Part shown: piece after piece, positions 402 to 5,610 of the stretch
Layout of the letters: the number at the start of each line of letters is the position of its first letter
How positions within the stretch are numbered: the first letter of the stretch is position 1
DNA from: Thecamonas trahens ATCC 50062
Taxonomy: Eukaryota > Protista > Apusomonadida
Reading direction: 5' to 3'
Length of the DNA: 19,007 nt
NCBI RefSeq assembly: GCF_000142905.1
Contig: NW_013657632.1
Coordinates: 296,626-315,632, forward strand
The notes under the pieces: generated by a model
Told to the model about the DNA's origin: nothing
Seen by the model: the letters and a program-made list of their open reading frames with translations, nothing else
Database searches by the model: none
Program-made: the position numbers and the translations under genes

Positions 402-905
402 CACAAACAGCGGAGTCTCGTTCCGATCACCAGGCAAGTCGATGAGAGCGCCTCGCTCCAGCAGCATGGGCACAGCATGAACTAAACCATAACGCGCCGC
501 CATATGAAAGACACCGATGATATCCTTTTCCGCAAAATTGACGGATGCGCCAGCATCAAGCAGGAGCGCCACCTTGTCCAACTCGTTCAGCGACATGGCC
601 ACGGCTGCGAGCGGAGCGACGTCCTGGTAGCAGGAGTCGAGCGAGACCCGGGTGGCGACCTGAGAGAGAAGGGCCTTCAACTTGTTGGCGCTTCCGTACC
701 GCACCACATCCAGCAACTGGTTCAGTATATTCTCCTCCCTGCGTCCTACTCTCCCCCATGCGCTTCCCGCATACGACAACCTGTGGTCACAGGTAGGTCG
801 GCTCTGGCTCGGTCTCTGGCTCCCGCCCGCTCGCTCGCCCTGTTGTGGTCCACCACCGCGACCTCGTCGGGCTCTTCTTTGGTATTGTCCCTTGCGTCTG
901 GCCAT
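393..905 (-). pseudogene. Ankyrin-repeat protein, 3'-truncated at the duplication junction
   Basis: Ankyrin-like segments (VALLLDAGASVN; VFHMAARYGLVHAVPMLLERGALID; GDRNETPLF). The third repeat is cut just after TPLF, and the stop (393-395) comes from the duplicated segment read out of frame. True start uncertain. Confidence 0.8.
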
Positions 906-1230
906 GGTGCGGGAGGGGGTGGGGTGAGGTGTGTAGGTAGTGTGGCCAGGTGCCGTCTATGGCCATCCTGTCGTCTGGTCACATCTCCTCGCCGACCCGC
1001 GTCTCCATCCGTGACCAGACGACAACTTGGCCATTCGGTACGGCAGGCCACCCGGACGTGGTTGTGCTGCTTCTCACCGACGAGCGCGTTGATCCATCAG
1101 CGTAGGACCAATGCAATGCAGCTTTCCGAGGCACACGTAGCTGTGCGGGAGACCAAGTCGTCGCGCTCCTCTTCGCTGACGATCGTGTCATGTGCTTCGG
1201 GCTCCGCCTCGGGCTCCGCTTCGGACTCGT

Positions 1231-1631
1231 TGTGACGCTGCTACGGTTTCATTTGCTACTGCGTGCGATTCGCAATCCACAGCACGACGGTGATGAGCGG
1301 CGAGGTCGAGAGTGAGGCCAGGAGCTTGCGGTTGAGTGGAAGGCCAAAGATCTTGATGGGCCGTGGCGTGTTGAACTTGATCGCCTTTTCGAGCGTCCGC
1401 ATCACGCGCTGCAGGTGCTTGGCGGCAAGATCGAGCTTGTACGGCGAGAGCTGTCGGATTGGTGGCACCATGCGGCTTGCTTTGTGCCCGCCGCGATTGC
1501 TGCTTGACGAGGACGAGGATGAGACCCACCACCGCTGTCCGTCCGAGTCGTCGGAGCCGCTGCCACCATGCCCATGGTTGTGCGCGTGCATCTTCATCGA
1601 CGCCAGCTGCGCCTTGATGTTGTCAAGGTAC
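1231..1631. repeat. Direct repeat copy B (3' end of the membrane-protein gene plus downstream bases)
   Basis: Same sequence as 1-401, offset 1230 bp. Confidence 0.97.
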
Positions 1632-3352
1632 TGCTGCAGATCGGCGATGCGGAACTCCTCCAGGAACTGGTTCTCCTTCTCCGGTAGCTCGGCGATGGAG
1701 AAAGAGGCGGTGACGGTAAAGGCGAGAAAGACGACGATAAGGACTGCGCTGATGATGCCGTACACCGCAAGCTCATCGAATGGATGGTCACTCTGGACCT
1801 CGCTCACCAAGACACGCAAGCCAAAGACGACAGCAAAGGCAACGAGAAAAATGACCGAGAAGACGAAGATCGGGTGGACGAGAGCCGAGACAAGCGAGTC
1901 GCGGTCCCACTGCCGGATCTCGCGCTTCATCCGCAGCCACATGAGAATGCTTCCGGAAGTGTTGAGCTTGAGCTCGAGGCCCTCGCCCGATGAGCTGCTG
2001 CTGTCGTCGGCGTCCACAACTTTGATGCCACCGTTGTCGTCACGGACGAGGTTAAACGCCACCAGCAAGCCGCGGTAGATCTTCCAGTAGTGGGCGGCAA
2101 TGGCGACGGCAGCAAGGAGAAAGGCAAGGGCAAAGACGAAGATCGAGTACGCCGACGAGACCACAATGAGCTTGTCGTACGTCGCGCCGCGGCCAAAGAA
2201 CTCTGGATGCTCCAGCGAGCGGTCGCCCGGATTGATGACGCGGTGCAGCGGGCCGGTAAGTGCAAGCCCAAGCGCGGCCGTCGCGGCCGCAAGACCCACA
2301 ATGGCCCGCGACCATCGCGCCTTGATCAGCCGCGAGTCACGCTTGATCTTGCGCAGCAGCAGCCGGTTGTCGATCATGTTCGTCTCGGCAGCCACCTGCC
2401 TGCTATCGCGGAGGTCGTTCTTGTAGGCGAAGCCGTCGCGGAGGTAAAAGTTGATGTCGCGGAGGTACCGCTCGTTGTTGGCCATGTCGTACACGGCGCC
2501 GGTGTCGGAGAGCCGCGACGAGAGCGAGAGGTTGTAGACGCAGACGACAACAACAACAAGCGCGGCCGGCGCAAAGACCTCCACCGACGAGATCGAGACC
2601 TCCTCAAAGTATACCACGTACAGCAGTATGTTCATCCACGCCAGATACGGAAGGAGAACGGCGGCGAGCGAGAACCAGAACATGTACCGCTTGTTCCGTT
2701 TCTCCGTCTTGGTCTGCCCGCCGTCGTCATCGCTCGAGCTGTCATCCGACGCCGTTCCCATCATCCCCACATTACGAGAGTCGGACGATCCGCTCTCGCT
2801 ATCGCTCTCGCTTTCTCCAGCGTGGCCGTAGCGGAGCCGTGCAAGCCATCTCGGCAGCTTTGCCCCGCACACGTTGTAGATGTCGACGACGAGGAAGACG
2901 GTAAAGGCGATGGGCGCCACAATCAGGACGGCCACAACCCACACCAGGCCCATGATCACCTCCTTCAGCCCCTTCCAGAACTTGGTATCCTTCACATTAA
3001 AGGTGTCAATGCGGAAAACAGACGTGCTCGACGTGCTCGACATGGTCGACGTGCTCGATGTCATGCCTTTCCAACTGGCTGACGAGCTGCTGCTCGACCC
3101 GCCCACACCTCGACCGCGCTGGAATTGCATGCCACCGGGGAGAGACACTGGCCCAGAGAGAATCCTTGCCAGTTCCACTGCCGGTGAGGATGTTGAGTGT
3201 GAGTTCCTCCCGCAACAAGCCACCGTGTGTGACTCGCTGTCGCTGCGGTGCTGCCGCATGCGTTTGGGGCTCTCTCCTTTGCACCTAGCAAAGAAAGGGC
3301 CACTGGCGCCCGAAAAAAATTGGCTGAAAAAAAGGCGTGAGGGCTTTAGCAT
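1256..3352 (-). CDS. Polytopic membrane protein (~698 aa), PHTF / 7TM ion channel (gustatory-receptor-like) superfamily candidate
   Basis: About 7-8 hydrophobic segments, S/T- and acid-rich N-terminal loops. Motifs LKLNTSGSILMWLRMKREIR, FLEEFRIADLQQYL and C-terminal PIKIFGLPLNRKLL...VVLWIA resemble PHTF and GR-type C-terminal signatures as recalled. First in-frame ATG is at 3352 (the ORF-track start at 3499 is TTG); later ATGs are possible. CDS is secure, family is moderate. Confidence 0.8.
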   Translation of the reverse strand: MLKPSRLFFSQFFSGASGPFFARCKGESPKRMRQHRSDSESHTVACCGRNSHSTSSPAVELARILSGPVSLPGGMQFQRGRGVGGSSSSSSASWKGMTSSTSTMSSTSSTSVFRIDTFNVKDTKFWKGLKEVIMGLVWVVAVLIVAPIAFTVFLVVDIYNVCGAKLPRWLARLRYGHAGESESDSESGSSDSRNVGMMGTASDDSSSDDDGGQTKTEKRNKRYMFWFSLAAVLLPYLAWMNILLYVVYFEEVSISSVEVFAPAALVVVVVCVYNLSLSSRLSDTGAVYDMANNERYLRDINFYLRDGFAYKNDLRDSRQVAAETNMIDNRLLLRKIKRDSRLIKARWSRAIVGLAAATAALGLALTGPLHRVINPGDRSLEHPEFFGRGATYDKLIVVSSAYSIFVFALAFLLAAVAIAAHYWKIYRGLLVAFNLVRDDNGGIKVVDADDSSSSSGEGLELKLNTSGSILMWLRMKREIRQWDRDSLVSALVHPIFVFSVIFLVAFAVVFGLRVLVSEVQSDHPFDELAVYGIISAVLIVVFLAFTVTASFSIAELPEKENQFLEEFRIADLQQYLDNIKAQLASMKMHAHNHGHGGSGSDDSDGQRWWVSSSSSSSSNRGGHKASRMVPPIRQLSPYKLDLAAKHLQRVMRTLEKAIKFNTPRPIKIFGLPLNRKLLASLSTSPLITVVLWIANRTQ

Positions 3353-3904
3353 GGCCAACGGCCGTGGTGTGTGGGGGAGGGGGAGGGGAAGACTGACGAT
3401 AGTGGAGAAATATTTGGCTTTCGGGCTCTTACTCTGTGTGTAAGGAAATGTGCAGGAGGGATGGATGATGGCACAAACGAGCACGCAACGACAGCACAAT
3501 CACGACCTGCAGTCTGTATCCCGTAGCATGCAGCGTGGGGTGCCATCCATCCATTCATTTCTCTAGGCTTCACAGCCATACCCTCACTCGCCTCAGCTTG
3601 CTTCTCCCCCGGTCGATCGACTTCCCTTTCCTTCCACTTCCCCTTGCCAATGAAACGCCCCAAGCCAACCACGCTCCACATAGCGCCAATGGCCATCATA
3701 ACCCTCCCCATGGCCAGCCACCACCATGCTCGCTCCCATCACAGCTGCAGACATGCCCATCATGGCGGCAGCGATGATCACCTACCTTTCCTTTGCCACG
3801 GCACTCATTGCGGCAAAGCGGCTCGGGTGGCGACTAGGTCGAAGACCGAGGGCACACTCGCGGCCACACTTGGCTCCAGGGAGCGGGAGAGAGCTACGGT
3901 CACC

Positions 3905-5286
3905 ATGTCTGTCAAACTCCATGTTCAACACGTACCTGTGGGTGACCCATTTTCGAGGTGCTGTTGGGGAGTGTTGGTGGTCCAGACAAGGTCGGGACCG
4001 TGTCCGGCATGTCCGACAACGACACGCTGGTTGCGTTGGTGCACCGATGCCCGCATCTGAAGTGCATCGATTTGACTGAAAGCGGCGAGGACATCACCGA
4101 TAGCGCACTCATGGTAGTTGCTGTCGACTGCCATGGACTTGAGGTCCTTGTTCTCAACAACTCTTCCGCCATCACCGACGACGGCCTACTCGCTGTCGTC
4201 CGCAACTGCCGGCATCTACGAACTGTGCTCATCAAGTTCTGCCGAACATCTCGTCCGACATGCCAGATATCATCGCCAGTGTGAACCCCAATGTGACGGT
4301 GACCATGACGGGTCCTTTGCGCTACGAGTCAGCGCATGCTTTGGCTCGACTCGAATCGAGATCCACGCTTGCCGCTGCGCCTATGACTCGGCAACTTCAC
4401 GGCTTTCTGTGGAACTCCGATGAGGTGCTCCCCATCGCAGCAGCCACAACCACTCCAACAGGCAATCTTAGGAGGCATGTTTGGTGGGGGCGGCGGTGAT
4501 GACGGTGGTTCGACATCCAAGTCCTTGGGGGATCCCGGTCGGCAGCCCCTGGCCACTTCGATTACCAATAGGTACCAGTCTGCCGGCTCATCGCCTACCA
4601 GCAGTCCGCCGCCGACATCGTCTCAGACAAACGAAGAAAGCGCTTCTGGAGGCTACATGGCGTCACCATCGTTTATCCAGCCGCCAGCTACAAACATTTC
4701 CGGTAGGAAGTGGGACGTGTTCATCTGCCACGGCGGCGGGGACAAGGGTATCGCCAGAGATCTCTACAACAACCTCACCGGTCGCGACCTCCGTGTCTTT
4801 CTTGACATCAAGTCGCTTGACGGTGAGCGCTGCGCAACCCCGCGTGACATGGTTGCCCACGTCAAGGCGTCATCGGTCGTTCTCGTCCTTGTTTCCAAGT
4901 TCCTCATTGTTTCGCGCTGGGCCATGGCTGAGGCCAAGGCCGCAGTGGATGCTGCCGACGCCAACCGTGGCAAGGTCTTCTCTGCCATCATCGGCAGCGA
5001 CATTACGTCGACCACGCTCCGCAACATGAAGGAGCATGATGTCAACAGCATCGACCATCCGCTCATCCACGCCATGGACAACTTCTTCCAAACCGACGCC
5101 CATCACGATCAGTGGTCCAACTGGCGGCACGAAAAGTTCACCCCTGCCCACAAGACCGATCACGTCGCCACTGTCTTCCGCCTCCTCGAGTACGGTTTCG
5201 CCCCGTTTGGTCCCAGTGACCAGCCGTCGGAAATCGTGAGCGAGATCGCCAAGCGAACACGCATCTTGGCGACAGGCTCCCCGTAG
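3905..5286 (+). CDS. Cys-containing LRR - low-complexity linker - TIR domain protein, frameshifted in this assembly (pseudogene or sequencing errors)
   Basis: Three LRR_CC/AMN1-like repeats (RCPHLKCIDLT..ITDSAL; DCHGLEVLVLNNSSAITDDGL; NCRHLRTVLIKFC). Adding one C at ~4242 gives CPNISSDMPDIIASVNPNV. A further frame change at 4387-4499 leads into the TIR ORF 4420-5286. The start at 3905 needs another 1-nt correction at ~3946; ATG 4009 is an alternative. Confidence 0.7.
4711..5283 (+). other. TIR domain (TIR_2-like) with conserved catalytic glutamate
   Basis: WDVFICHGGGDK (betaA), LRVFLD (betaB), SSVVLVLVSK (betaC), SRWAMAEAKAA matching the SxWCxxEL motif; Glu codon at 4930-4932. Confidence 0.88.
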
Positions 5287-5339
5287 ACTAACCAACCCGA
5301 TCCAAGCTCAGATCATTTGTCCCCCAAAGTGCGACGATG

Positions 5340-5367
5340 TATGTGTGTGTGGGGGGGGGGGGGGGGG
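5340..5367. repeat. Short (TG)n run followed by a G17 homopolymer, between convergent genes
   Basis: tatgtgtgtgt then G at 5351-5367, read directly. Confidence 0.9.
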
Positions 5368-5610
5368 ATGCAGACAGGGAGGGTGTGTGTTTGGGCAAAA
5401 AGAAAAAAGAATGCGTTACTCGGTATTCCCGTGTGGTCCCCCACCACAGTACTAACCAAGCCTCATGCTGCTTGACTTCCGAGAGCGAGACGGGATCGGG
5501 TATTTTCAGCATAGGATGAACGCATTCAGAACCAGAGTGACTGGCTGAGCATTTTATTGGTTTGGCGACAAAATTAGCCACTTGCCAAATGGGTTGAGGA
5601 CAGACTCCCC

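Follow-up and report, generated by a model that had tools for sequence, protein, structure and literature searches.

A probably decayed allele of a single-chain leucine-rich repeat and TIR gene in the apusomonad Thecamonas trahens

Here, we analyze a gene at positions 3905-5286 (plus strand) of a 19,007-nucleotide stretch of DNA, referred to throughout as the window, with which the 315,632-bp contig C48 of Thecamonas trahens ATCC 50062 ends. The gene combines leucine-rich repeats (LRRs) with a Toll/interleukin-1 receptor (TIR) domain, and with a probability of about two in three we read the locus as a decayed allele of a single intronless gene, encoding LRRs, a spacer, a linker and a TIR domain in that order, which is intact in wild relatives. 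A soluble native protein of ~466 residues with its LRRs joined directly to the TIR domain is partly supported by the sequences compared here. The original prediction for this DNA, made from its letters alone, had proposed just such an LRR-TIR protein; two environmental contigs lend its architecture support as the native structure, while the copy in the window is disrupted by insertions and deletions (indels).

Results

The reference allele is divided among several reading frames

The public protein for this locus, recovered by word search, is P0001 (AMSG_08833 / XP_013754589.1), with 313 aa; exact look-ups of P0001, of a 288-aa open reading frame (ORF) and of a 91-aa LRR ORF matched no records. 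A single reading frame over positions 3905-5286 does not hold in the window, where three frame changes and five TGA codons lie between the LRR and TIR parts and where 3527-5286 is tiled by four overlapping open frames without a single ORF. The segments of the gene are as follows, with the frame given as the coordinate modulo 3.

3905-3951, plus strand: start codon and first 15 native codons (frame 2); the same ATG opens the ORF in the environmental contigs L074 and L075, described below
3946-4284, plus strand: LRR open frame, 112 codons, in the same phase as the TIR ORF
3952-4241, plus strand: N-terminal cap and cysteine-containing (FBXL-type) LRR turns (frame 1)
4242-4427, plus strand: last LRR turn and start of a predicted disordered spacer (frame 0; codon-usage score +14.4, equalled by an off-frame of the linker)
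4420-5286, plus strand: linker and TIR ORF, 288 codons with stop TAG at 5284-5286, the sole long open frame of the reference allele (frame 1)

The frame of the TIR ORF is already open from 4387, and the third phase is open across 4143-4499. Five TGA codons close the LRR frame (at 4282, 4294, 4300, 4306 and 4384), the four clustered ones being an off-frame view of GTG ACx or ATG ACx codons of the third phase. Codon usage scores +44.8 over 3952-4241 and +133.8 over the TIR; the third-phase segment at 4245-4430 scores +14.4, compared with a mean of -6.3 for shuffled sequence (p 0.017) and with -16 to +0.3 for non-coding controls, with the caution that an off-frame of the linker scores equally. 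A profile of GC content at third codon positions across the gap between LRRs and TIR revealed no clear periodicity. The reference allele fails as an intact coding gene: no frame is open throughout, and no intron with species-typical signals is present.

Environmental contigs read from the LRRs into the linker

An exhaustive protein search identified two ORFs in European Nucleotide Archive (ENA) metagenomes, P0004 and P0005, whose sequences are the same as that of the LRR part. They lie on the contigs L075 (ERZ1643211, 4035 bp) and L074 (ERZ505273, 1762 bp, coverage 1.4). L075 aligns with window 415-3440 at 99.6% identity without gaps and L074 with window 2753-3440 at 99.1% identity, and they further cover window 3614-4604 (L075) and 3614-4460 (L074). 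The two contigs differ from one another by 2 substitutions and 2 indels in 847 bases, and the window differs from each by 6-8 substitutions and 4-6 indels. This divergence is small, and we therefore take the contigs to be wild haplotypes of the same species. The 173 bp between the aligned parts (window 3441-3613), in the shared promoter region, are unique in the genome and missing from both contigs; we read them as an indel rather than an intron because their ends are fixed (TA...GT).

L074 contains a single ORF that starts with the ATG at 3905, passes through LRRs and spacer and enters SPSQQPQPLQQ, which in the window forms the N-terminal part of the TIR ORF. L075 contains a single ORF that runs from right after the second lesion listed below to its end at window 4604, encoding spacer and linker; it is in phase with the TIR ORF of the window and passes right across the annotated intron. 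Read-through from LRRs to linker in these two contigs therefore suggests that the native gene is one intronless ORF of ~466 codons. The environmental N-terminus aligns from its first methionine with a subtelomeric LRR family of T. trahens, a co-linearity that is clear only from the environmental ORFs, as window 3905-3946 gave no significant local-alignment similarity to the N-termini of the paralogues.

The same contigs bear on the idea that LRR and TIR were never one gene, and that an LRR-family relic happens to lie upstream of an independent TIR gene. No other LRR-TIR gene was found in the genome at the sensitivity used, and subtelomeric fragments are shuffled (window 5156-5595, for example, has a copy on contig C51), yet the LRR frame of L074 is stop-free into the start of the TIR ORF and L075 extends that same frame to 4604, leaving this idea with very little to recommend it.

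Indels separate the LRR half from the TIR in ATCC 50062

A three-way alignment of the window, L074 and L075 defines the following lesions.

3951-3952, plus strand: lesion 1, one base short (TTTT against TTATT in L074 and L075), a frameshift
4241-4243, plus strand: lesion 2, CC in the window and L075 against CCC in L074
After 4339 (-1) and after 4366 (-17), plus strand: a deletion pair relative to both contigs, jointly in frame, with 9 codons scrambled
4428, plus strand: lesion 3, an extra C absent from both contigs

These five indels fall within 480 bp (3951-4428), whereas 3026 bp of flank have none. Through lesion 3, the ATG at 4420 comes to share the frame of the TIR ORF. Lesion 2 is a real allele rather than an assembly error, since the same state occurs in L075, an independent Illumina-type assembly. 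We conclude that the reference copy is probably broken by indels and that an LRR-TIR polypeptide could not be made from it.

Several observations weigh against a decayed allele of a once-intact gene. The full ORF is intact on no single contig, and the native ORF is chained from three haplotypes (L074 from the ATG to 4460, L075 over 4242-4604 and the window over 4387-5286). The last 225 bases of L074 (L074:1538-1762, GC 0.60) have no match in the reference genome; this tail may come from chimeric joining or represent a rearranged haplotype; in the latter, the LRR ORF would end after 207 codons. Pfam LRR models score below their cut-offs on this protein (LRR_4 13.6-14.8 bits against 27, LRR_6 11.4-13.6 against 23.4, and LRR_At5g56370 17.2 against 27). 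Finally, the reference alone shows lesion 1, lesion 3 and the -1/-17 pair, which could be assembly errors.

This last point opens onto a different account of the locus, in which the reference assembly is at fault for the frame changes and the gene of ATCC 50062 is really intact. Neither contig shares lesion 1, lesion 3 or the -1/-17 pair, which lack a second witness, and frame is broken elsewhere in this assembly, in an ankyrin (Ank)-kinase-TIR paralogue on contig C1 and in an HSP70-family gene (C17:110128-111893) that lies in two overlapping frames (profile positions 17-432 and 414-594). We nonetheless regard an intact gene as improbable: lesion 2 is identical in the independent L075, a 17-base deletion is untypical of sequencing error, neither lesion 1 nor lesion 3 (a C before TCCCC) is a plain homopolymer miscount, and the alignment of L075 with the window goes from 0 indels in the 3026-bp flank to four gap openings in the 1 kb that follows. 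A reading in which every lesion could be mended within runs of C was set aside as weak: runs of at least two C come every 18 bases here, lesion 1 concerns an A within a run of T, and there are two more indels. In its own right, the HSP70 break means that a conserved gene contains either a frameshift or an assembly error.

The annotated intron lacks the splice signals of the species

The public gene model divides the locus differently, and we compared its intron with introns verified in T. trahens actin and HSP70 genes (n=3).

4009-4235 and 4572-5286, plus strand: annotated exons of AMSG_08833, from P0001 mapped onto the window
4236-4571, plus strand: annotated intron of AMSG_08833, 336 nt, donor GTTCTG, acceptor AATAG
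L064:1426-1508: verified intron
L062, minus strand: verified intron, 75 nt
L070, minus strand: verified intron, ~380 nt

T. trahens is intron-poor, and its preferred donor has C at position +4 (bioRxiv 10.1101/2022.06.08.495308). The verified introns have donors GTACGT or GTACGC and a branch site ACTCAC 19-25 nt before the AG, a signal strict enough to be used for auditing public models. The annotated donor matches GTACG[TC] at fewer than 4 of 6 positions; a CTCAC-type branch site is absent from 4230-4571, as is any GTACG-type donor from 4200-4571. Because L075 reads straight through this segment as an ORF, we judge the intron of AMSG_08833 to be an annotation artefact, most plausibly left by a gene caller stepping over frameshifts.

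Were the public model correct, the gene would have two exons and a 336-nt intron and would encode 313 aa with three LRRs and a TIR. Boundary GT and AG are indeed present, the length of the intron is divisible by three and lies inside the verified range of 75 to ~380 nt, and the entry stands in both NCBI and UniProt. Set against these points are the poor donor and missing branch site, an excision that removes exactly the stops, a coding score in the third frame over the first 190 intron bases, ORFs through the intron in L074 as well as L075, and a second public protein, P0003, that likewise skips residues at a frameshift. Together these leave the public model hardly credible. P0003 is the model of the C1 Ank-kinase-TIR paralogue (L042:3040-3120; C1 ~68,040-68,120), in which a frame change falls inside an ankyrin repeat, too tight for an intron, and the public protein omits about a dozen residues there; this model, too, probably conceals a frameshift, and the omission suggests a habit of the gene caller.

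A TIR domain of predicted enzymatic type

Two features mark the TIR half of the gene.

4701-5283, plus strand: TIR domain (Pfam TIR_2, AlphaFold model, Foldseek, codon usage)
4930-4932, plus strand: GAG codon of the putative catalytic glutamate of SRWAMAE

Pfam TIR_2 (PF13676) matches at E 9.7e-12, with 45.9 bits where the cut-off is 28, and PF01582 scores 24 where it is 21.3. An AlphaFold model built from an alignment of 21 TIRs has a predicted local distance difference test score (pLDDT) of 86 and a predicted template-modelling score (pTM) of 0.86. Searched with Foldseek, it gave 33 PDB matches at E <= 0.001, topped by the TIRs of plant receptors that combine nucleotide binding with leucine-rich repeats (NLRs) and related plant TIRs (RPV1, RPS4, RUN1, SNC1, AtTIR, L6, RPP1 and ROQ1, with template-modelling scores of 0.6-0.7), which rank above the TIRs of SARM1, MAL, MyD88 and Toll-like receptors (TLRs). 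SRWAMAE aligns with SSWCLDE (the WCLDEL motif) of AtTIR 3JRN in a phmmer search against the PDB, and its glutamate occupies column E81, invariant in the 21-sequence alignment with bacterial-like TIRs included. The aligned glutamate is required for NAD+ cleavage in plant TIRs and SARM1. These comparisons predict a TIR of the enzymatic plant and bacterial type, with NADase activity inferred from its domains, and they bear out the TIR domain with SRWAMAE that had originally been read from the sequence.

In a comparison with ThsB models of the bacterial Thoeris system, PADLOC ThsB1 scored E 0.001 and 16 bits, and PDC-S66 E 8e-6. When JGI metagenome contigs were scanned with the TIR ORF, only distant bacterial-like TIRs came up, and the nine that were fetched all lack LRRs; word searches with 198-aa and 120-aa pieces of the TIR recovered no environmental TIR fragments. 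Separately, an environmental protein of 1075 aa (P0036 / P0152, on ENA contigs of 7.9 and 5.0 kb) has the order TIR, NB-ARC, LRR_6, as in plant TIR-NB-ARC-LRR proteins (TNLs), and its TIR is 33% identical to that of the window.

The intactness of this half makes it possible that it lives on by itself, with the 288-codon frame expressed from the ATG at 4420 and under selection and the LRR half defunct. Neither stop nor shift interrupts the TIR frame, which keeps the catalytic glutamate, lesion 3 sets the ATG at 4420 in that frame, and all five indels fall in the first 524 of 1382 bases, which under an even spread has a chance of (524/1382)^5, ~0.008, in a test chosen post hoc. Plant TIR-only proteins provide a precedent for such a gene. 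On the other side, the environmental sequence stops short of the TIR half, where in-frame damage may be present; translation of an mRNA with an upstream start would begin with the ATG at 3905 and end at 4058; and expression of the TIR alone would need a putative internal promoter. We consider a TIR-only survivor possible but on the whole somewhat unlikely, and keep to a decayed allele of one LRR-TIR gene as the preferred reading.

FBXL-type LRRs and a disordered linker without a membrane helix or ATPase

Cysteine-containing LRRs lie at about 3988-4320. The LRR segment matches the genome's own arrays of 26-residue, cysteine-containing (CC-type) LRRs at E 5e-9, a match confined to window 3988-4245, and a two-unit hidden Markov model (HMM) finds LRR domains at 1e-10 (26-28 bits), to which the frame-shifted continuation adds only 2.5 bits; a one-unit HMM built from the paralogues proved too narrow. 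The exhaustive protein search returned more than 140 LRR proteins at E < 1e-11, several of them checked with Pfam. A model of the 191 environmental N-terminal residues has four to five strand/helix turns at pLDDT 80-94 and is disordered past residue 140, and its best PDB matches in Foldseek are the LRRs of FBXL17, FBXL2, TIR1 and NLRP1.

The linker occupies the first 96 residues of the 288-aa ORF and is 47% serine, proline and glycine, and the spacer at 4242-4496 has no second match anywhere in the genome. Between LRRs and TIR, no 19-residue segment in any frame exceeds a mean hydropathy of 1.0; the hydropathy peak of 1.79 is a core strand of the TIR, and no transmembrane-like segment lies outside it. 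The P-loop motif G-x4-GK[ST] is absent from all plus-strand frames over 3700-5286, and P0001, the TIR ORF and the environmental ORFs have no Pfam match to NB-ARC or NACHT. The protein is thus neither a TLR, with no transmembrane helix, nor an NLR, with no NB-ARC domain or P-loop.

In these respects the original prediction was accurate: its cysteine-containing LRRs are homologous to the CC-type arrays of the genome and match FBXL17, FBXL2 and TIR1 in fold, its linker is rich in serine, proline and glycine, and hydropathy, motif and Pfam scans are clear of the transmembrane helix and P-loop or NB-ARC domain that it had excluded. The profile check it had called for came out divided, with TIR_2 above and the Pfam LRR models below their cut-offs.

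TIR and LRR genes of T. trahens and the neighbourhood of the locus

The T. trahens genome has at least 27 TIR_2 matches, many near contig ends, in architectures that include Ank-kinase-TIR, TIR-NB-ARC-WD40, Ank-TIR-NB-ARC, TIR-AAA, TIR-Ulp1 (peptidase) and GNAT-TIR. Closest to the window TIR are those of two Ank-kinase-TIR genes (48-50% identical), and those of the TIR-NB-ARC-WD40 family are 33-40% identical; the motifs DVF[IL]CHG..DKG and RWA.AEA are common to the window TIR and this repertoire. No other TIR in the genome had an LRR within 500 residues, and in three LRR searches none had one less than 10 kb away. The genome searches for LRRs and TIRs score only the best candidates and hence give lower bounds, six TIR loci were judged by coordinates alone, and the far ends of several TIR paralogues were unread. 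At the sensitivity used, LRR-TIR is a singleton architecture in this genome, and the search for intact LRR-TIR paralogues that the original prediction had called for found none. The TIR-AAA protein AMSG_01571 has a weak LRR_6 match.

The LRR half has relatives in a subtelomeric family of CC-type LRR genes that, like this gene, lie near contig ends. Co-linearity with the family begins at the first methionine and extends over N-terminus and LRR units, with 26-27% identity over the aligned N-terminal part. The repeats of its members, numbering from 5 to more than 20 and nearly identical, lead into a C-terminal region that is unrelated and has ankyrin-like segments, whereas this gene has only four or five divergent turns and then the TIR.

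Between the TIR gene and a DUF1800/DUF1501 gene lies a full-length 5S ribosomal RNA gene (5408-5527, minus strand; Rfam RF00001, 104.9 bits). The repeat around it (5349-5595) has more than 25 genomic copies at 88-99% identity, frequently located close to contig ends and, at a distance of no more than a few hundred bases, upstream of TIR-NB-ARC-WD40 genes.

Contigs with such copies of the 5S repeat: C59, C64, C97, C39, C57, C79, C22 and C125

On contig C51, positions 110895-111327 (L030, L048) are a 94-96% identical copy of window 5156-5595; with the last 130 bases of the TIR ORF and the 5S gene, this segmental duplicate holds a gene fragment only. Upstream of the LRRs, a short ORF contains a 21-residue hydrophobic stretch (3753-3815, plus strand; mean hydropathy 1.94), which we rejected as a real feature: it is probably a chance occurrence, and 3500-3904 has no coding signal.

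Discussion

Proteins that join a sensor to a TIR domain take several forms, with which the gene described here shares features. The best fold matches of its TIR are plant TIRs (RPV1, RPS4, RUN1, L6, RPP1 and AtTIR AT1G72930, at Foldseek E 6e-7 to 1e-4), which like it have a DVF..H/S start motif and S-x-W-x-x-x-E with the glutamate, at a sequence identity of only 14-19%. Plant TNLs, however, have the order TIR, NB-ARC, LRR, whereas here the LRRs are N-terminal and are followed by a disordered linker and the TIR, without an NB-ARC domain; moreover, the LRRs are FBXL-type, unlike the plant-specific LRRs of TNLs. TLRs have the same N-to-C order, LRR and then TIR, but the protein described here has neither a signal peptide-like N-terminus nor a transmembrane helix, its LRRs are of the intracellular FBXL/ribonuclease inhibitor-like type, and its TIR is nearer to enzymatic plant TIRs than to those of TLRs, MyD88 and MAL.

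A likeness in layout is also found among bacteria. Many clusters in the ESM Atlas, from Bacillota, Bacteroidota and Chloroflexota, combine LRR_4 and TIR_2 in proteins of 300-640 aa; uncharacterised themselves, they have the same two domains as this gene, a similar size and, like it, no transmembrane helix or STAND ATPase (signal transduction ATPase with numerous domains). The likeness was drawn from language-model feature scores of 0.80-0.89 and automatic annotation, and is to be taken as a lead rather than an alignment, and the LRRs of these clusters are annotated LRR_4 or LRR_8, as against FBXL-type here. The architecture had been proposed as distinct from both TLR and NLR, and with no transmembrane helix or NB-ARC domain it is so; as a layout it has, in these clusters, a possible bacterial precedent. 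The domains at hand suggest a eukaryotic fusion of FBXL-type LRRs to a TIR. Literature searches found no paper linking Thecamonas with TIRs, and none on an LRR-TIR NADase or on the ENA sample codes.

We propose that the native protein would comprise a cap and four to five FBXL-type LRR turns (approximately residues 1-140), a disordered spacer of ~140 residues rich in serine, proline and glycine, and a C-terminal TIR. In ATCC 50062, three net frameshifts and the compensated -1/-17 pair would sever the LRR half from the TIR, leaving the 288-codon linker-TIR frame open, and the two-exon public model would mask this damage by a false intron. In the intact protein, a ligand might bind on the face of the LRRs and thereby gather TIR domains, which might then cleave NAD+ to give a signal or to deplete NAD+. 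On this view the gene would be a dispensable one of immune type, with fast turnover, near a chromosome end. A further step, which we offer as speculative and more probably wrong than right by a wide measure, is that wild Thecamonas populations harbour functional as well as null versions of a single-chain receptor of the cytosol, in which an FBXL-type LRR directly controls an NAD+-cleaving TIR with no ATPase switch or membrane anchor; such a gene would be the eukaryotic equivalent of the LRR-TIR proteins of bacteria, and would show a presence/absence polymorphism like that of a plant resistance gene.

NAD+-cleaving TIRs are an immune output common to bacteria, plants and animals, and apusomonads are a sister lineage of animals and fungi; to our knowledge, the coupling of TIRs to sensors outside bacteria, plants and animals is poorly mapped. 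Our analysis suggests that an apusomonad fused LRRs directly to a TIR, with neither a STAND ATPase nor a membrane anchor, and that in nature the gene may exist in intact-looking and in frameshifted form, a turnover such as immune-type genes would be expected to show. It also corrects the public model AMSG_08833, in which an artefact intron probably hides a pseudogene.

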